This document shows, piece after piece, positions 5,576 to 49,540 of a stretch of 64,000 nucleotides of DNA. Source of the DNA: Tubulanus polymorphus (Eukaryota; Animalia; Nemertea); contig NC_134032.1 of NCBI RefSeq assembly GCF_964204645.1, positions 1,358,316-1,422,315 on the forward strand, written 5' to 3'. The notes beneath the pieces were generated by a model. The model saw nothing but the letters and a program-made list of their open reading frames with translations. It had not been told where the DNA came from and searched no databases. The translations under genes and the position numbers were made by a program. Position 1 is the stretch's first letter; each line of letters begins with the position of its first letter.

Positions 5576-5777
5576 GTGGCGCCACCGTCATCGTTGAAAG
5601 TCGACCAGCAGCAGCAGCAGCAGCAGCAGCCACCAACAATGATTCCAGCGGTAACCAATGATACGATCAATTCGCCCCGGAGCAGTCCTAATCCTCCTCC
5701 GCCGCAGCAGCAGCCTCCTGTGATGACTAGAAGTCGCCCTCCAAGTCCTAAACAACCTTCCACTAGCTGCAATACTG
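5576..5777 (+). CDS. dve: Candidate internal coding exon (Gln/Pro/Ser-rich) of a long N-terminal isoform of the dve/SATB locus; its upstream exons would lie outside the window
   Basis: Acceptor tttacag|GTG at 5575/5576, donor ACTG|gtatgt at 5777/5778. Open frame VAPPSSLKVDQQQQQQQQPP...STSCNT. Exit phase 1 matches the phase-1 acceptor at 30557. Confidence 0.6.
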
Positions 5778-25839: not shown

Positions 25840-26005
25840 ATGACTGATTCTCGTGAGCTGTTAGGCGGCGCCGGTCTGCCGCCGACGTTCGGATTCCCGG
25901 CCTACTGGCCGCCCGGGATGGATATCGCTATGACGATGCGGGAGGCCGCTGAAGCCGTCAATCTCGGCTCGTCGACGATGATGCCCGATCAGCCGTGCCC
26001 GTCAG
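25840..26005 (+). CDS. dve: First coding exon of the short (internal-promoter) isoform of the dve/SATB locus
   Basis: ATG at 25840 with an in-frame TGA 3 nt upstream. MTDSRELLGG...PDQPCPS. Donor TCAG|gtact, phase 1, joins 30557 in frame. Confidence 0.75.
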
Positions 26006-29779: not shown

Positions 29780-30230
29780 GAATAACTGTGGAACTGGATC
29801 TACTGTCAAATTAAACCCCACACAACTATGGAACTGGGTCCAGAGTCAAATTAAACCCCCATCTGACTGTAAAACTGGGTTCAGAGTCAAATTAAACCCC
29901 CATCTGACTGTTAAACTGGGTTCAGAGTCAAATTGGACCCCCATCTGACTGTAAAACTGGGTTTAGAGTCAAATTAAACCCCTATCTGACTGTAGAACTG
30001 GGTTCAGAGTCAAATTAAACCCCATCTGACTGTATAACTGGGTCCAGAGTCAAATTAAACCCCCATCTGACTGTCAAACTGGGTTCAGAGTCATATTAAA
30101 CCCCCATATGACTGTAAAACTGGGTTCAGAGTCAAATTAAACCCCCATCTGACTGTAAAACTGGGTTCAGAGTCAAATTAAACCCCCATCTGACTGTTAA
30201 ACTGGGTTCAGAGTCAAATTAAACCTACAT
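29780..30230. repeat. 41-bp minisatellite
   Basis: Unit CTGGGTTCAGAGTCAAATTAAACCCCCATCTGACTGTAAAA. Confidence 0.9.
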
Positions 30231-30556
30231 TTCTGTGATATTGAATCCAAAGTCGAATTTAACCCACGCTCAGTTCCAGTCCTGCTGGTTGCTTACAGTG
30301 TGCAGACAACACTTCAAAGGCCAATGGAGCGGTCCAATGGAGAGATTGAATGAATAATCCAATCGGGTTAGTTTCGGGAAACCAAGATCCAAATGACATA
30401 AAGCAAAAACAAACAAACAACTGTAAAACTGGGTTCAGAGTGAAATTTAACCCACTCAAGGGTCAAGAGTCGAAGTAAATCCACCTAACTGTGGTTCCAA
30501 AGTCAAATCTCAAAATTCTCGATACTTATTTGCGTTTAATTTGTGAATATTTTCAG

Positions 30557-30784
30557 GTGCAGCCAAGTCCGTTCCAATTCACTGTATCGTCGAACAGATG
30601 TCGTCGCCGGGTAACGCCGACAGCGTCTGCCCGTCCCAGCACGCAGCGGTGACCGGCGCGGCCGCCGCCTCCGTAGAACTCGACAGTTACGCCATTATTC
30701 CGTGTTCGACTTTATTCAACGAAATCGTACGTTCGGCGCTGATGAAACTCGGTTATTCCACCACGGAATCCATGACGGCTAAAG
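30557..30784 (+). CDS. dve: Shared exon: N-terminal part of the COMPASS/ULD (ubiquitin-like) domain
   Basis: Acceptor tttcag, donor AAAG|gtaaat (phase 1 to 1). Translates (G)AAKSVPIHCIVEQ...ELDSYAIIPCSTLFNEIVRSALMKLGYS...AKG, the characteristic Dve/SATB ULD motif. Confidence 0.95.
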
Positions 30785-31890: not shown

Positions 31891-32017
31891 GCGCGATTCA
31901 AGTAAAGAACTGGAAACCGTTGTCGTTCGAACAGATCACCGATAATCCGGAAGCTACAGTTGAAGATATTCTCTCCGATTTAACGACCGTCGCCACTTTA
32001 CGCATACGTATTTATAG
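31891..32017 (+). CDS. dve: Shared exon: C-terminal part of the COMPASS/ULD domain
   Basis: Acceptor tatttcag, donor TATAG|gtacg (phase 1 to 2), 127 nt. (G)AIQVKNWKPLSFEQITDNPEATVEDILSDLTTVATLRIRIY. Missed by the ORF track. Confidence 0.95.
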
Positions 32018-33467: not shown

Positions 33468-33579
33468 TGTAGTGGTAAAAACTAACGCAGCCACTGCAGA
33501 CGTTAAAGATAAACTATTACAGTTGTTGTTGACTCAATCGCAGGGTCTACTCTCAAACCTCGGCTGCCCTATCGATAAG
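33468..33579 (+). CDS. dve: Cassette A exon 1: first half of a degenerate CUTL-like domain (Dve type)
   Basis: Acceptor ctttcag, donor AAG|gtaagc (phase 2 to 0). (S)VVVKTNAATADVKDKLLQLLLTQSQGLLSNLGCPIDK resembles the Dve KDKLL..LL.QS..LL...GCP motif. Confidence 0.9.
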
Positions 33580-36194: not shown

Positions 36195-36770
36195 GAATAA
36201 ACCGTACGTCAGCCGCCGCCGGTTACTCATCTATTGGTTATTACACGCGACTGACACCAGGTGGCGCTACATCGCGACGAATAAACCGTTCGTCAGCCGC
36301 CGCCGGTTACTCATCTATTGGTTATTACACGCGACTGACACCAGGTGGCGCTACATCGCGACGAATAAAGCGTCAGCCGCCGCCGGTTACTCATCTATTG
36401 GTTATTACACCCGACTGACACCAGGTGGCGCTGCATCGCGACGAATAAACCATATGTCAGTCGCCGCCAGTTACTCGACATCTATTCGTTATTACACCCG
36501 ACTGACACCAGGTGGCGCTACATCGCGACGAATAAACCGTTCGTCAGCCGCCGCCGGTTACTCATCTATTGGTTATTACACCCGACTGACACCAGGTGGC
36601 GCTGCATCGCAACGAATAAACCATATGTCAGTCGCCGCCAGTTACTCGACATCTATTCGTTATTACACCCGACTGACACCAGGTGGCGCTACATCGCGAC
36701 GAATAAACCGTTCGTAAGCCGCCGCCAGTTACTCATCTAATTACACCCGACTGACACCAGGTGGCAGTAG
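36195..36770. repeat. About 84-bp minisatellite carrying ACACCAGGTGGCGCT (7 copies)
   Basis: Motif starts near 36256, 36340, 36420, 36507, 36591, 36678 and 36756. Confidence 0.92.
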
Positions 36771-38461: not shown

Positions 38462-40387
38462 GATCTGTTGAATCTGATTAGTCAAGGCGATATATCGAGC
38501 GCGAATATCGACGACGATAAACGTCTGTCGTTTCTGCGCTGGTACAACGAAATGTTGGAGAAAATCAACCACGGAAAACTACGCCATTACAACAACGCCG
38601 AAATCCCGCCGCTGCTTCCCGTATTCCCTAAAAACTCGGTCGTCGTTCCGGCCTCGTCTCCGGAATCGTCGCCGAGCAAAGACGCGGTAGACGGCGCCGC
38701 CAACAACAACAATAAACATTCGTCGTCGCCGGCGATGGCCGCCGTTTCGATCCATAAAACGCGGTTTCGGACTTCGTTCGACCCGGATTTAGAGATACCT
38801 CGATTGCAGCAGTGGTTCCAGCGTAATCAGCACCCGACGCGCGATCAGATGTTGCGGTATCTGCACGAGTTGAACGCGCTGGAGTCGCGTCGCGGTCGCA
38901 AGCCGCTCGACCTCACCAACATCATCTACTGGTTCAAGAACGCGCGCGCCGCTCAACGACGCGCGTGTCGCAATCTGGAGCTGGCGCTCGACGACGGCGC
39001 ACGCCTCGACGACAGAACGTGCCTGGATGACGGCGCGAATCTAGACGACGGCGCACGATTGGACGACGGCACACGCCTGAACGGCGCATCGACGGATGAC
39101 GGCACACGCCGCGCTGACGGCGCACAGCACGAGTTCATCGACGATAATGACAACCTCAGCGTCGAACGTCACAGTCCGATTTCCCTAGTAACGACGCGGC
39201 ATAGTGCGCCACCTGGTGGTCGCGTTATTTGTAACGGCGATTCCGACGCGGAATCTAAATCGGGCGGAGGCGGGGCGCCGGCGACGACCGATTCGACGAT
39301 TCCCGAATTACCGAATAAGAACGCGGTTTACGTCGTGAATCCGCTGATTCCCGATCGAATCGTCGCGAACGGCTGCGACGCCGAGTTCACGACTCGTCGA
39401 GAGGAGGCTCTAGATATGAGTCGACACGGCTCGCCGACTCGCAACGATAAAACACCTCCGCCGGTTAACCGGCTAAACAGGTCGACACCGACGATCAACG
39501 ACGACGATGAAAAGGAGGATGAAAACGGTCGTTATAACGACGATGATGATGATTTCTCGGATCATTCCAACGAAGCGATCGATATGTCGACCGGCGGCGC
39601 TCGCGAGTCGACGTGGGTCGACCGGTCAACTAGTCGACTACTCGACCGATCGAACGGCGACCGGTCGAGCAGCGTCGACTCGTCGACCAGCTCGTTTCCG
39701 CTGGAGACTAAACCGGATTTGAATACGTCGTCGCCGTCGTTATCGTCGCACTCGAGTCCGAGTCGACTGACGAACGGCGCGACGTCCGTGAAGGCGGAGC
39801 CTCCCGACGACGGAGGACACCATCACCGCGACAACGATGCATTTAAAGCGGCGTTCGCGGCGCACGCCCACCTGACGAGCGCCGCCGCGGCCGGTCTGTC
39901 GATGGTGCAGTCGTCGCTCGGCTATCATCACCATCGGTTACACCTACCGCAGAATCATCCTCACCACATGATCGCGCCTTTCTACGGCGTGATGTCTCCT
40001 TCCCTCCTGTCTCATCATCACCATCATCATCATCAACACGGCCATCCTCATCATCACAACAACCAGCCGCAGCAGCAGCAGCAGCAGCACGGTACGGGCG
40101 TAACGACGGCGACCGGTAACAGTAGCGCGTCAGCGGCCGCCGAGGAGCGGCGTAAACGCACGCGCGTTTTCATCGACCCGCTGTCGGAGATCCCGAAGTT
40201 GGAGAAATGGTTCGTGGAGGACACTCACCCGACGGCGTACATGATCGAGAAATACTGCGATGAGTTAAACAAGTCCGAATATCGTCAACGATTTCCGCGT
40301 CTCGAACCGAAAAACGTTCAATTGTGGTTTAAAAATCATCGCGCGAAAGTGAAACGAGCTCGGTTAGAATCGCCGACGGCCGTGTGA
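38462..40387 (+). CDS. dve: Cassette A terminal exon: two atypical K50 homeodomains of Dve/Compass (isoform A = 852 aa from ATG 25840)
   Basis: Acceptor gtttcag, phase 0. HD1 KTRFRTSFDPDLEIPRLQQWF...IIYWFKNARAAQRR (about 38753-38961). HD2 RRKRTRVFIDPLSEIPKLEKWF...VQLWFKNHRAKVKR (about 40148-40357). His and Gln tracts; TGA stop. Exon lengths sum to 2559 nt, a multiple of 3. Confidence 0.96.
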   Translation, partial: DLLNLISQGDISSANIDDDKRLSFLRWYNEMLEKINHGKLRHYNNAEIPPLLPVFPKNSVVVPASSPESSPSKDAVDGAANNNNKHSSSPAMAAVSIHKTRFRTSFDPDLEIPRLQQWFQRNQHPTRDQMLRYLHELNALESRRGRKPLDLTNIIYWFKNARAAQRRACRNLELALDDGARLDDRTCLDDGANLDDGARLDDGTRLNGASTDDGTRRADGAQHEFIDDNDNLSVERHSPISLVTTRHSAPPGGRVICNGDSDAESKSGGGGAPATTDSTIPELPNKNAVYVVNPLIPDRIVANGCDAEFTTRREEALDMSRHGSPTRNDKTPPPVNRLNRSTPTINDDDEKEDENGRYNDDDDDFSDHSNEAIDMSTGGARESTWVDRSTSRLLDRSNGDRSSSVDSSTSSFPLETKPDLNTSSPSLSSHSSPSRLTNGATSVKAEPPDDGGHHHRDNDAFKAAFAAHAHLTSAAAAGLSMVQSSLGYHHHRLHLPQNHPHHMIAPFYGVMSPSLLSHHHHHHHQHGHPHHHNNQPQQQQQQHGTGVTTATGNSSASAAAEERRKRTRVFIDPLSEIPKLEKWFVEDTHPTAYMIEKYCDELNKSEYRQRFPRLEPKNVQLWFKNHRAKVKRARLESPTAV

Positions 40388-40962
40388 CGCGAATCACTGA
40401 TTGAATCACCGACTGAATCACCGACTGAATCACTGATTTTCATGTGATGATTCTCTATTTCCCTATCACTCACATTTCTATTATTGGTCTCAATATTTTT
40501 TCTATTCGTTTCAAATTCCGTTGAACGTTGTTGTTTTCTTTTTCTTCTTTTCGTCGATTTTGAGAAATATTTTTATATCGAGTCTCGAAAATGACGAATT
40601 TTTTGATACATTGCCAAAAAAACACAAGCAATAGTAGTATACCTATCATTCCCCTAGATTTACATGCACATGTCGGTGTGTACACATGCACATGTCGGTG
40701 TGTACACATGTACATGTTAGTGTGTACACATGTACATGTTGGTGTGTAAATGCATTTAAATTTGTGTCGATATACATTCGATGTACGTAGGCCTACATGT
40801 CTGTGTAGTATGTTGATGTACATGTACATGTCATTGTGTTGGTTTGTTGATGTACATGTACATGTCGATGATGTATAACTGTGCTATGATTATCACCAAT
40901 CAATCAATTTTGTCTCGCGTTTTTATTGAACTGAGTTCAACGTGCTATATTTGTCTCATCTA

Positions 40963-41695
40963 TAGTTCATCTCACCGCGTACAGGTGGAGCTAGTGTCTG
41001 CGACCTGCTCATGATAGTTCATCTCACCGCGTACAGGTGGAGCCAGTCTCTACAGGATGCTGGTTATTGTTCATCTCGGCTATCGTCTGCTGGATGCTCA
41101 TAATAGTTCATCTCACCGCGTACAGGTGGAGATAGTGTCTGCGACCGGCTCATATTAGTTCATCTCGCCGTGTACAGGTGGAGCTAGTGTCTGCTGGATG
41201 CTCATAGTTCATCTCGCTGTGTACAGGTGGAGCCAGTGTCTGTGACTTGCTCATAATAGTTCATCTCGCCGTGTACAGGTGGAGCTAGTGTCTGTGACTT
41301 GCTCATAATAGTTCATCTCGCCGTGTACAGGTGGAGCTAGTGTCTGCTGGATGCTCATAGTTCATCTCGCCGTGTACAGGTGGAGATAGTGTCTGCGACC
41401 GGCTCATAATAGTTCATCTCGCCGTGTACAGGTGGAGCTAGTGTCTGCTGGATGCTCATAGTTCATCTCGCTGTGTACAGGTAGAGCCAGTGTCTGCGAC
41501 CTGCTCATAATAGTTCATCTCGCCGTGTACAGGTGGAGCTAGTGTCTGCGACCTGCTCATAATAGTTCATCTCGCCGTGTACAGGTGGAGCTAGTGTCTG
41601 CTGGATGCTCATAGTTCATCTCGCCGTGTACAGGTGGAGCTAGTGTCTGCTGGATGCTCATAGTTCATCTCGTTGTGTACAGGTGGAGCTAGTGA
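40963..41695. repeat. 49-52-bp minisatellite carrying GTACAGGTGGAGCTAGTG (about 14 copies)
   Basis: Direct reading of the units. Confidence 0.92.
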
Positions 41696-43042
41696 CTCTA
41701 AAGCAGTTGAAGGACGGCCGCTTACGTTCCCCCTATGATGTCACGGGGGTGTTTCGGATTCGCAGCCAATAGGTTTAAACTTTCATTACATATAAACAGA
41801 TATATATATACATTCCTATCAATTTTATTTGTTAAATTCTTCGCTTTTGATAAATTATTTATCATTGATTATTATAATTATAATTACTATTATTAATGGT
41901 TTAATTTTATCATTATCTACGCATACGAAAAGACCCACGAATAAAACTGAATTGAGATTGATTCTACTAACTGTACTGGCGCTGGGCAGCACTTTGTCTC
42001 TCGACGTTTTAATTCACGTCGCCGAGACTGTCTGCCGACGGGTTAATTATTTTTTTTTTTGGGGATCCCGGTTTTAATGAGGGTTGATTCCGACCGAAAC
42101 GATGAAATTTAGACTGGCGTAAATCTGTAAATAGCGCGTCGGGGCTAGATTCGTAATCGATCTCCGCGACTGACAAACAAACTTCCAAGCAATATATAAA
42201 ATAGATGCATTTATCCTAAACGTATGATGAAAACGATGATGATGATGAAAATGTCTCGGTTTCCTGTCTATATTTTGCCCATCTGAGAATTCGACGAATT
42301 TCAAAACTTTTTGAAATCGTCCGCCAAATTAAACGTTTTTTAATACATTCCATTTTTATCCGATGTAAATTTGCTAAACTTATTCAGTATTCGAAGCCAA
42401 ATTCAGTCTGATGTTTTTACTGCCCCCCGTGCGCGTGTGTTAGGAGTCATTTTTAGATGATTTCCTCAAATTTCATTATGGTGATGTCGATAAAATCGAA
42501 ATGAAATTTCCACTCAAATCCAAACTTACTCTATTATCGTCTCGCGAGCCTGATTTTTAATAAGCTTTAAAATTAAGAAAAATCGAATTTGATAACGTCT
42601 CATTAAACGGTGTCTCATTGATTAGCGGCTCATTAATTAGGAAGTTAATTAATCGCTTGCGATCGTGCGGCATTATGGTTTTTAAAACTTGATGAATAAA
42701 AAAAAAAACTGTTTTACGCGGTATTTTATCGTTTACGTCGAATGATTGTATCATGAAGATTTCTGTGTTTTCAATTGAAATATAAATCGATTATGATTAT
42801 AATGATTATTATGATTATTATTATTATTATTATTGATATTAGATGTGCTATCACCAGTAATTATTCCACCTTCGTTTTATATAAGTTATTATTATTACAT
42901 TTACTATATTTCGCTTATTTCTAATGCATTAAACATTCCATTTAAACGTTTCAATATTTCCACATATTTCGGGGTGGATTGAAAAGAAAAAAAAATCGAA
43001 ATTTTAACGAAACTGCGAAAGAATGCAGTTTGATGCTGGTAT

Positions 43043-43580
43043 AAATCTGCTGTCTGTACCCTGAACACCTCAGACAATCTGCTGTCTGTACACTGAACAC
43101 CTCAGACAATCTGCTGTCTGTACCGGGCACCACCTCAGACAATCTGCTGTCTGTACCCTGAACACCTCAGACAATCTGCTGTCTGTACCCTGAACACCTC
43201 AGACAATCTGCTGTCTGTACCCTGAACACCTCAGACAATCTGCTGTCTGTACCCTGCACCACCTCAGACAATCTGCTGTCTGTACCCTGAACCACCTCAG
43301 TCAATCTGCTGTCTGTACCCTGAACACCTCAGACAATCTGCTGTCTGTACCCTGCACCACCTCAGACAATCTGCTGTCTGTACCCTGAACACCTCAGACA
43401 ATCTGCTGTCTGTACCCTGAACACCTCAGACAATCTGCTGTCTGTACCCGGCCCCACCTCGGACAATCTGCTGTCTGTACCCTGAACACCTCAGACAATC
43501 TGCTGTCTGTACCCTGCGCCACCTCAGACAATCTGCTGTCTGTACCCTGAACACCTCAGACAATCTGCTGTCTGTACACT
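43043..43580. repeat. 32-bp minisatellite, about 17 copies
   Basis: Unit AATCTGCTGTCTGTACCCTGAACACCTCAGAC. Confidence 0.95.
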
Positions 43581-44466
43581 GTTATGTATCCACTGTCTGT
43601 AAACCCTATCTGTAAACCATCACTAACCAAGTAGGCCAATTCATTCACTGTTCATCCATTCTTTTATGGATGGATGGATACAGGTCTGCATGCATCTGTA
43701 GCCCAAAATTTGGTGCCATTTGGCTGCTGATGTCAAAATCAATACCGGTACTTTTTAACAAAGTTTTTCAAGCTGAATTTGAAGACGCTTTCATCAATCG
43801 CATTGATAATCAATGATACATGTACCAATATCTACCCGAGTAGCATCTGCAACCTTAAGGTAACGCAATCAGTATCAAGATGTCCTAGTAACAGCCTTTG
43901 TTGGTCACCAAAACCGGCGCTTAATTCGTAAGTTTTATCGCAGACGCTTCGATGAATTGTCTTGAGGTTTGGTTACAGATATCATCACGAGATAAATTTG
44001 ATCGGACGAAAGCTGAACGTCCTGCGATCTTTTTCAAAAATCGCCATTTTAAGTGTGGATTCCCTCTCGATGGTTCGCCGTATGGCAGTCAGATTTATAC
44101 CTGCGTTAACTAATACGTGATCTCCTCCTCGGGCGCCGTTTCAATCGGGAGGTGGTTCACCGTGTTTTCGACCGTTTGGACTGAATTTTTCTCCGATTTT
44201 GATTTTCTGGTTGATTTCATCGTCGTCTCGATTTTGAATTTAATTTTTCCAAATGAATTCGTAAGATCGCTATATTTGCACCGAACTCGCTGTACTATTG
44301 TTAAAAACACACAGATTATTTTAGATTCAATAAGATAAAGATATATATGAATATATATATATATATATATATATTAACACTAAATCTATGTATACAAATA
44401 ATTGTTTTGTACAAATATCGTTTTTTGTACATATTTTCTGGAGATGAAGAAAAGGAAAAAATGAAA

Positions 44467-44959: not shown

Positions 44960-45065
44960 TGACCAGACGATCACGTGGACAGATCACGCGGTACGCTGTG
45001 CTGTGATTGGTCTACTGAAAGAGACTAGTCAAACAATCCTTGCTTCCCAGTGTCCACTTTCTCAG
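44960..45065 (+). CDS. Cassette B exon 1: first half of a SATB-like CUTL domain
   Basis: Acceptor taattccag, donor CAG|gtaaat (phase 2 to 0). (S)DQTITWTDHAVRCAVIGLLKETSQTILASQCPLSQ. Entry phase matches the donor at 32017. Confidence 0.9.
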
Positions 45066-45095
45066 GTAAATGTGTAAATCTTTAATGTTTCTTCA

Positions 45096-45384
45096 TTAAC
45101 CCTTTCAGTGCTGACTTATTAATACCCTTTAGTGCTAGAGATAATTTTTAAATTTTAAAAAATTCCACCCTAGTGTGTTGAATAACGGGAATACCATTAT
45201 AGTGCGTCTACACTGCGGCGCGGTGTATCGTTAGTTACTAGTATTTCACTATGTTTGTCAGGTGCTGCCATTTTTCAAGAGAGATAATTACTAATAACAT
45301 CAATACACCGCAGTGTGGTGTACTAGCAAAATCCATCACTGATTTACACACCGCACTGCAGTGTAGACGCACTGAAAGGGTTAA
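45096..45384 (+). mobile_element. piggyBac-like MITE, copy 5
   Basis: Same TIRs, TTAA on both sides. Confidence 0.9.
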
Positions 45385-45748
45385 TCGAACTTGATTAAAA
45401 GACCTACCCCTTTTTCAAAAGCTGGTTAGTTAGCCCTAAGGGGAGGGGATCCAGGGTCCAATTTCAACTACCTCAACAAAAATGGGCGCTTTGAAATTAA
45501 GGCGCATCATAGGAATCAACCCCAATTCACAGTGCGAACAATTTTCGACTATCTATGATGATATTTTTGCAAGAACCTGACTACTGTGTTCAAAGTGGTT
45601 TGAATTATGTTCAGCCTTTCTTCAAGAAGGGTATATCAGATTATTGGGATGCCTCGTGAGGCATGTGGGTTGGGGGGGACCCTGGATCCACCTGGTTTTA
45701 TTCGTCATACGTTTCAACTAATTTCTACATGTATTTATTTTCCGCTAG

Positions 45749-45845
45749 TCTCTGATATCGAACATCGCGAATTTGAAATATTCCGCGAAAATCAGCCGTG
45801 AAAAATGTCGGGAATTCGGCGTGTGGTACGACAAATACCGCCGAG
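45749..45845 (+). CDS. Cassette B exon 2: second half of the SATB-like CUTL domain
   Basis: Acceptor ttttccgctag, donor CGAG|gtgagt (phase 0 to 1). SLISNIANLKYSAKISREKCREFGVWYDKYRR. Confidence 0.9.
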
Positions 45846-46252: not shown

Positions 46253-46397
46253 AGAAGTTTTCCAATGAGACGGCAGGAGGCGCCACTGAAGGGGCTGTTA
46301 AAGATACGAGGCTGACGTTCCACCCGAAATATGAATTACCGATCATGAGGAAATGGTACAGCGAGTGTAATAACCCGACAGATCGGTTACTGGAGCG
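46253..46397 (+). CDS. Cassette B exon 3: N-terminal half of homeodomain B1
   Basis: Acceptor tctatctcag, donor GAGCG|gtgagt (phase 1 to 2). ...KDTRLTFHPKYELPIMRKWYSECNNPTDRLLE. Confidence 0.88.
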
Positions 46398-46548
46398 GTG
46401 AGTATCGTCAGTGAGGGAGGGTTCTATCGTCAACTCTTCAGCGGGTTGGCAGCCTGTGGCAGCCTTGTGTGGCAGCCTGTGGCAGCCTTGTGTGGCAGCC
46501 TGTTGCAGCCCTGTGTTTGTAGTAACAACAGGCAGTAAGGTTCTGTGT

Positions 46549-47259
46549 AGAGAGAATCCAACAATAATAAGGAAAAAAAAGTGCGAAAATGTTTCCTTGA
46601 GCTAGTGTAGTTTATTCAGCGTTTTGACTATATCCTTATAGTCATCTTCAGGAATACTGTATTCCTTGAGCTAGTGTAGTTTATTCAGCGTTTTGACTTT
46701 ATCCTAATAATCATCTTCAGGAATACTGTATTCCTTGAGCTAGTGTAGTTTATTCAACGTTTCGACTATATCCTAATAGTCATCTTCAGGAATACTGTAT
46801 TCCTTGAGCTAGTGTAGTTTATTCAACGTTTCGACTTTATCCTAATAGTCATCCTCAGGAATACTGTATTCCTTGAGCTAGTGTAGTTTATTCAACGTTT
46901 CGACTATATCCTAATACGTTGAATAAACTACACTAGCTCAAGGAATACAGTATTCCTGAAGATGATCGGATATAGTCGAAACGTTGAATAAACTACACTA
47001 GCTCAAGGAATACAGTATTCCTGAAGATAACTATTAGGATATAGTCGAAACGTTGAATAAACTAAACTAGCTCAAGGAATACAGTATTCCTGAAGATAAC
47101 TATTAGGATATAGTCGAAACGTTGAATAAACTAAACTAGCTCAAGGAATACAGTATTCCTGAAGATGACTATTAGGATATAGTCGAAACGTTGAATAAAC
47201 TAAACTAGCTTCAGTTACATTTTCGGACTTATTTTCGTTATTATCGTGGGATTCTCTCT
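46549..47259. mobile_element. Penelope-like fold-back element with tandem 69-bp minimal hammerhead ribozyme units on both arms
   Basis: Outer inverted repeats (46549-46592 / 47217-47259). About 4.7 units on the - strand (46593-46915) and about 4 units on the + strand (46916-47210). Confidence 0.8.
47154..47197 (+). ncRNA. Minimal type I hammerhead ribozyme (best-preserved sense unit)
   Basis: TATTC-CTGAAGA-T-GACTAT(taggat)ATAGTC-GAAA-CG-T-T-GAATA: stem I, catalytic core, stem II and a palindromic ACGT stem III. Confidence 0.75.
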
Positions 47260-47328
47260 GCATCGCTTCAACACGGATCCAGAGTGTTTTATCAATCGTG
47301 AGTAAGGTTGTGTATGATTATATTGTAG

Positions 47329-47489
47329 TTATGTGACGGAACTGAATGAAAGCGCGACGCGACACGACCGCGCTCAGCTGACCGTACACAATCTGAGAAA
47401 CTGGTGGAAAAACGAGCGACAACGAGAGAAAAAACACGGACCGCGGACTATGAAATTCCAGGAGCCGAGGCCGTGTTTTACTTACTACG
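47329..47489 (+). CDS. Cassette B exon 4: C-terminal half of homeodomain B1
   Basis: Acceptor tattgtag, donor TACG|gtgagc (phase 2 to 1). (R)YVTELNESATRHDRAQLTVHNLRNWWKNERQREKK... Confidence 0.88.
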
Positions 47490-48806: not shown

Positions 48807-49540
48807 ATGAAACGGCGGCGAACCCGGCCTCCGGTAAAGTACATATAACATTCGATACAGTGCACGAGATACCTCTACTACGTCACTGGTACACGAGTAA
48901 TAAAAAACCATCTAACGAGTTACTGCAGCACTACGCGAACACGTTAAACCACAGTCCGGTCAGAGACGGAAAACCGAAAGTGAATTATCATAAACTACGT
49001 AACTGGTGGAATAACGAAAAACAACGCGAGCGCAAATCCGAACAGCATCAGCTGCCGAGACGCGGTCCCGGTCGACCTCCCAAATACCCGGCTTTAAACG
49101 AGCAAGCTAAAACAACCGATAACAGCGCCGCTACCGCGACTAGCGGCGCCGAACCGTACTATAAGAGACAGAGAACTAGCGATCATCATCAGCAGGGCGA
49201 GAGGCCGGTGTCTCAGAACGAGCAGCCGCCTGTCGCGCCGTCCTCTCCGCCGTTACAGTTGACTAATCTGGTGAACTCGCCGAGTCGCGCGTCTGGAATC
49301 CAGCGCTCGAGTCCGATCTCCCAATCTCTGAACTTTCATCACCACGGTTTAGATTTACTGGCCGAATCTCAGTTCTACGGGGGACACGCGCCCGGCGCTA
49401 TGATGTTTACGGCGTATCAGCCGAGCTCGTCGACGCCACTATTCCCGTCGCCGAGCCCGTATCGACCGCTGTCGCTGAGTAACGCTCGCGAAAGCCCGTC
49501 TGAACGATCATCGCAACATAGTAACAAGGACAACACGTAA
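48807..49540 (+). CDS. Cassette B terminal exon: homeodomain B2, AT-hook and Ser/Pro-rich tail (isoform B = 587 aa from ATG 25840)
   Basis: Acceptor ttttcttgcag, phase 1. KVHITFDTVHEIPLLRHWY...KLRNWWNNEKQRERK, then RRGPGRPPK; TAA at 49538-49540. Isoform exon sum is 1764 nt, a multiple of 3. Confidence 0.9.

Follow-up and report, generated by a model that had tools for sequence, protein, structure and literature searches.

The locus examined here raises the question of whether vertebrate SATB1 and SATB2 descend from an alternative end of a Compass/dve gene. According to the original prediction, a second cassette of this locus in the nemertean Tubulanus polymorphus carries a near-vertebrate SATB CUTL domain, and vertebrate SATB may stem from the B-type isoform and insect Dve from the A-type isoform by reciprocal loss of cassettes. 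Our analysis points to a two-cassette gene, to an ancient duplication giving rise to cassettes A and B, and to derivation of the ULD-CUTL half of SATB from B, a reading that is probable as a whole. The window, i.e., the whole stretch of DNA analyzed, comprises 64,000 nt; positions refer to it, and all exons lie on the plus strand.

Organization of the Compass/dve locus

Profile searches detected a single ULD in the T. polymorphus genome, located at this Compass/dve locus and encoded by two shared ULD/COMPASS exons at 30557..30784 (228 nt, phase 1-1; Pfam ULD E 3.3e-15) and 31891..32017 (127 nt, phase 1-2; Pfam ULD E 5e-16), the donor of the latter being suited to both cassettes. Upstream, the first coding exon of the RefSeq isoform (5639..5777) ends in phase 1, as placed by exact mapping of the isoform A protein P0001, while a candidate alternative first coding exon at 25918..26005 (ATG, 29 codons, phase-1 GT donor) is proposed from the sequence alone. 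Cassette A consists of an exon at 33468..33579 (112 nt, phase 2-0, mapped with P0001) encoding the first half of a divergent CUTL domain, CUTL-A, and a terminal exon at 38462..40387 with the second half of CUTL-A, two Dve-type homeodomains and the stop codon. The RefSeq first exon, the two ULD exons and cassette A make up isoform A, for which the best protein match was the RefSeq product of T. polymorphus (99% identical). Isoform A is an ordinary COMPASS member like Drosophila Dve and C. elegans DVE-1: it has a ULD and two homeodomains with a 10-residue insertion, at the spacing of fly and beetle Dve, and no CUT domain. It differs in carrying a divergent CUTL, whereas the COMPASS family is usually drawn without one.

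Cassette B follows with five exons. The first half of its SATB-like CUTL domain, CUTL-B, is encoded at 44960..45065 (106 nt, AG/GT, phase 2-0) and the second half at 45749..45845 (97 nt, AG/GT, phase 0-1), followed by a phase-1 intron specific to B and SATB. Homeodomain B1 is split between exons at 46253..46397 (145 nt, phase 1-2) and 47329..47489 (161 nt, phase 2-1), the latter with the WW-K motif, and the terminal exon at 48807..49540, entered in phase 1, encodes homeodomain B2, a tail and the stop codon. All five exons are bounded by AG/GT and, joined to the ULD exons, form a single open frame of 531 codons. Cassettes A and B each open with a phase-2 acceptor matching the donor of the second ULD exon. 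With high confidence, the locus can be described as a Compass/dve gene with shared ULD exons, cassette A of the Dve type, and then cassette B with a CUTL domain and two atypical homeodomains. We propose that this one gene would give rise to two transcription factors through a choice of 3' cassette, in which the phase-2 donor of the last ULD exon is joined to cassette A or, with A skipped, to cassette B; we infer B splicing in T. polymorphus from exon anatomy, compatible phases, open frames and domain identity.

Some further features of the locus were observed. The second B homeodomain seems to be particular to T. polymorphus, and exons 3 and 4 of cassette B (46253-47489) form a phase 1-1 unit whose in-frame skipping would yield a product with one homeodomain. 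The intron splitting homeodomain B1 contains a palindromic array of 69-nt units (46590-47210); four units fit a hammerhead-like core pattern, although an Rfam search of this array returned no hammerhead family and only hairpin matches below threshold. An intronic MITE-like element of ~290 nt is present in five copies (32201, 34314, 37955, 45096, and 47640), one of them between the CUTL-B exons, and minisatellites with units of ~85, 50, 32, and 41 nt lie in introns or between the cassettes at 36200-36760, 40960-41760, 43030-43610, and 29800-30270, respectively.

CUTL domains and introns in comparison with SATB

Each CUTL-B exon alone found SATB1 structures as its sole PDB matches (E 0.0033 for the first and 7.8e-5 for the second exon). 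The Pfam check proposed with the original prediction matched ULD on both shared exons and CUTL on both B exons, with E 0.024 for the first and E 5.8e-9, over the cut-off, for the second; the exons were searched singly or entered as individual rows of an alignment, joined models being used for alignment and trees only. The hand count of about 30 of 62 identical residues without gaps holds, as 30/61 residues counted from the alignments were identical to the PDB SATB1 chain in a gapless comparison, and 29-32/61 to fish and lamprey SATBs. Moreover, a predicted B-type model matched the SATB1 CUTL with a TM of 0.83. The label "near-vertebrate" was, however, overstated: the ~50% identity of CUTL-B to SATB is at about the level seen among B domains (mean 48%; SATB-B mean 46%) and far below that among SATBs (mean 72%), so T. 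polymorphus does not stand out as vertebrate-like. Against SATB, the CUTL-B of crinoid and sea urchin scores slightly above that of T. polymorphus.

The equivalent in cassette A had been called barely recognizable. It is indeed divergent (15-17/65 identity), but nonetheless a genuine CUTL: a search with its profile retrieves SATB1 (E 3.6e-8), the profile aligns with that of CUTL-B at a probability of 97.5%, and with its predicted model a wider structure aligner ranked the CUTL of SATB1 highest (Z 8.3; 65 residues at rmsd 2.4), a match that Foldseek with the same model missed. Furthermore, CUTL-A and CUTL-B share the position of a phase-0 intron in the alignment.

The phylogeny supported grouping of CUTL-B with SATB, as originally claimed. 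In the CUTL tree, support was 96/94 for A and 95/89 for B together with SATB; with the first homeodomain added for the invertebrate rows, the values were 100/99 and 97/81, and SATB fell inside B. The SATB signal in these trees is carried by 65 columns, from a sampling without amphioxus, tunicate and hagfish; the partial Ixodes and Sinanodonta rows were left out, and the rooting, on rows P0173 (L026:123-1004) and P0184, is provisional. These two proteins have a divergent ULD, a CUTL, one homeodomain and mixed A/B traits, and possibly represent a pre-duplication form; they belong to neither A nor B, and their scores are nearer those of B. With profiles built from protostome sequences alone, every SATB was called B (74-105 bits as B against 23-35 as A), and ambulacrarian A still scored marginally higher as A. 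At the diagnostic columns SATB equals B at 17/21 and A at 1/21, including the N-terminal Trp and the absence of the extra Gly of A, but many of these matches may be ancestral states, as P0173 and P0184 share several of them.

The introns of isoform B have phases 1,1,2,0,1, followed by 2,1, and its second ULD exon measures 127 nt; the resemblance to SATB2 proposed originally was confirmed for croaker SATB2 and milkfish SATB1a, the two fish genes on which the SATB intron comparison is based. The argument is mostly non-diagnostic, though: phases 1,1,2,0 and the 127-nt exon are found in isoform A too, since the first three introns border exons common to both isoforms, and A also has the fourth. 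Only the fifth sets B and SATB apart, a phase-1 intron just after CUTL being present in cassette B of five invertebrates (T. polymorphus, scallop, mite, leech, and crinoid) and in both fish SATBs, and in none of the A cassettes examined, in which CUTL-A runs on into the large homeodomain exon; its position shifts by several codons, and it therefore counts as one modest character only. Within SATB, CUT1, CUT2, and CUTL each carry a phase-0 intron immediately behind the aligned Gln that precedes the recognition helix; the Onecut and Cux CUT domains of the T. polymorphus genome have no such intron. The idea that SATB CUT1 and CUT2 are copies of CUTL, based on this common intron, was rejected, as they align with Onecut/Cux CUT (96.8%) and hardly with CUTL-B (2%).

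Distribution and age of the two cassettes

By profile search and name look-ups, B-type CUTL was found in scallop, mussel, limpet, whelk, Lingula, leech, spiders, mites, a pycnogonid, Ptychodera, a crinoid, and Diadema. T. polymorphus, scallop, mite, and crinoid agree in the succession of exons, the ULD being followed by A1 (phase 2-0), the large A exon, B1 (2-0), and B2 (0-1). In scallop, isoforms A and B are both annotated with one start, and proteins from short contigs in which the ULD is directly joined to CUTL-B are consistent with spliced transcripts. The B homeodomains form a single clade across phyla (97/82), including those of Diadema and Ptychodera. The A/B duplication almost certainly predates the split of protostomes and deuterostomes, given the presence of B, besides ambulacrarians, in molluscs, the brachiopod Lingula, a leech, and chelicerates.

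The survey of phyla retaining A or B thus located B in molluscs, brachiopod, leech, chelicerates, and ambulacrarians, while for insects it was performed at the protein level: none of the named insect protein matches had a B domain and insect Dve proteins are A-type, which on balance suggests that insects lack cassette B. In Lottia no B was found within 10 kb downstream of A, which is not proof of loss. A leech locus (L011:10001-18295) contains the ULD and cassette B with no cassette A between them, so loss of one cassette does occur. As judged from these sequences, reciprocal loss of B in insects and A in vertebrates would fit the data.

A two-cassette Cmp/Cmpl locus has already been published for sea urchin and hemichordate, with shared Compass exons, a two-exon Cmp set and then a mutually exclusive Cmpl set, and that study reports it as exclusive to ambulacrarians (Cavalieri et al., 2013, PMC3784565). 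The T. polymorphus locus is in accordance with this description in having shared Compass exons, a Cmp exon pair and a Cmpl set downstream, and its B homeodomains group with those of Ptychodera and of Diadema, which stands in for Paracentrotus CMPl; counted from its CUTL, the Diadema B protein has ~165 residues, close to the 163 that are unique to CMPl (PMC3784565). Contrarily to the exclusivity stated there, the two-cassette locus is here found in protostomes, whereby a published molecular character for Ambulacraria is overturned. T. polymorphus B further differs in having five exons and two homeodomains with a spacing of 39 as in Cmp (40-41 in ambulacrarian B), whereas CMPl is described with a single homeodomain carrying an 11-residue insertion; the available text ties CMPl to neither a CUTL domain nor SATB ancestry (PMC3784565). 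In a literature search whose coverage misses most subscription journals, no paper linking CMPl to SATB was found. As far as this literature reaches, it appears to be new that B occurs across protostomes, that both cassettes carry a CUTL, and that the B/Cmpl CUTL is linked to SATB.

Origin of the SATB front half

Cassette B shares with vertebrate SATB1 and SATB2 the ULD followed by a CUTL, the latter with ~50% identity and the same predicted fold, and the first five intron phases, but it lacks CUT1 and CUT2, and its homeodomains have an insert of ~10 residues and WW-K, as compared to FF-Q and no such insert in SATB. They carry WW at 48-49 with Compass spacing, lie outside the SATB homeodomains and are not SATB-type (F48, single-glycine insertion). 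No CUT domain (PF02376) was matched on the T. polymorphus contig, all five genome matches being on other contigs; besides Onecut and Cux, the genome holds a divergent CUT domain (L016, G000:C10:534651-534851). The CUT domains of SATB are of the Onecut/Cux kind. Without CUT domains and with homeodomains of the Compass type, B is no SATB itself, and it can have contributed no more than the ULD-CUTL half; for this front half, an origin from B is likely. The claim that SATB derives from B is thus retained for the ULD-CUTL half only.

We propose that a tandem duplication of a CUTL-homeodomain unit, before the protostome-deuterostome split, made both cassettes, after which CUTL-A would have diverged and CUTL-B remained conservative. 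Vertebrate SATB would most likely have drawn its ULD-CUTL from the B splice form and its CUT-CUT-homeodomain part from another gene, with the phase-1 intron after CUTL as a plausible junction and with the A cassette and the B homeodomain lost on the way. This agrees with the shuffling model, in which, as cited in later reports, SATB combines a Compass N-terminus with CUT and homeodomain of another gene (Takatori and Saiga, 2008, via PMC3784565, PMC11788884), and adds to it B/Cmpl as the donor of the N-terminus including CUTL and a candidate junction intron.

Two alternatives concern cassette B itself. It might be a recent lineage-specific duplicate of A, as A and B are homologous by profile comparison; with an A-B identity of 17/65, B orthologues in several phyla, and rejection of a recent duplication in T. 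polymorphus by the AU test (p = 0.0008), this can be virtually dismissed, and the outcome named beforehand as fatal to the original prediction did not materialize. It might also be a gene in its own right, lying downstream and driven by a promoter of its own, or an unused remnant, in line with the retrieved RefSeq product of the T. polymorphus locus being the A form only and with the listing of B as a distinct ULD-less gene in the annotations of Lingula, Patella, and Diadema. Given the phase-2 acceptor of B1 fitting the ULD donor, the five AG/GT exons with their open frame from the ULD, and the joined ULD-CUTL-B products in other species (PMC3784565 too), this is improbable.

The other two alternatives concern the source of the SATB CUTL. 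The published model implies descent from the canonical Cmp/A form. This route, with a deuterostome A that stayed SATB-like, would be in accordance with the hemichordate CUTL-A, which is nearer SATB (20-22/65) than protostome CUTL-A, and with the two-homeodomain Compass gene reported for amphioxus (PMC10515288). With CUTL alone, the AU test did not reject SATB as sister to ambulacrarian A (p = 0.23); with CUTL plus homeodomain it did (p = 0.007), the latter alignment having been chosen after the former result. As this descent also demands reversal of the A states of protostomes and ambulacrarians (loss of Trp, extra Gly) and a gained phase-1 intron, we consider it highly improbable. It is less remote, though still unlikely, that the SATB CUTL came from a third, pre-duplication-like Compass lineage, its likeness to B reflecting retained ancestral residues from which A diverged: the AU test rejected neither SATB as sister to all A (p = 0.14 and 0.22) nor a B clade without SATB (p = 0.50), and the position of P0173 and P0184 outside A and B but nearer B in score would suit such a lineage. 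However, the gene would have to be lost in every invertebrate sampled, the T. polymorphus genome having one ULD; a residue of A and P0173/P0184 is missing from both B and SATB, and the free trees place SATB inside B.

An origin of the SATB front half from B would also bear on function. The ULD of SATB1 forms tetramers that are required for DNA binding (PMC3351170), and by analogy the A and B products would oligomerize through the same ULD, so that oligomers of both kinds of product could arise and read DNA with two different CUTL-homeodomain ends; their proportions would depend on splice choice. In sea urchin, a histone-cluster insulator is bound by CMPl and not by CMP (PMC3784565), which hints at a role of B in chromatin architecture. 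More tentatively, and with some doubt on our part, the B/Cmpl isoform might be a bilaterian-wide proto-SATB tethering chromatin via ULD oligomers and CUTL, of which vertebrates kept the front half while losing A, and flies and nematodes kept only A. If so, Dve and DVE-1, widely used as stand-ins for SATB, would correspond to the sister cassette, and the ancestral function of SATB would have its models in molluscs, annelids, chelicerates, and echinoderms. The designation of Dve/DVE-1 as SATB ortholog needs qualifying, the ULD being in common and the CUTL module coming from the sister cassette. SATB1/2 are treated as a novelty of vertebrates, and with a donor splice form and a candidate junction named, their origin becomes directly testable.

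Cassette B is often missed by gene annotation, split off, or fused to A. Gene models with A and B fused into one protein were seen in mite (P0084), hemichordate (P0123), and crinoid (P0129), and in Patella A and B stand under adjacent locus tags. The adjacent oyster identifiers Cmp1 and Cmp2 (PMC5322547) possibly correspond to A and B, and the pycnogonid models P0121 and P0149 contain tandem or extra B cassettes.
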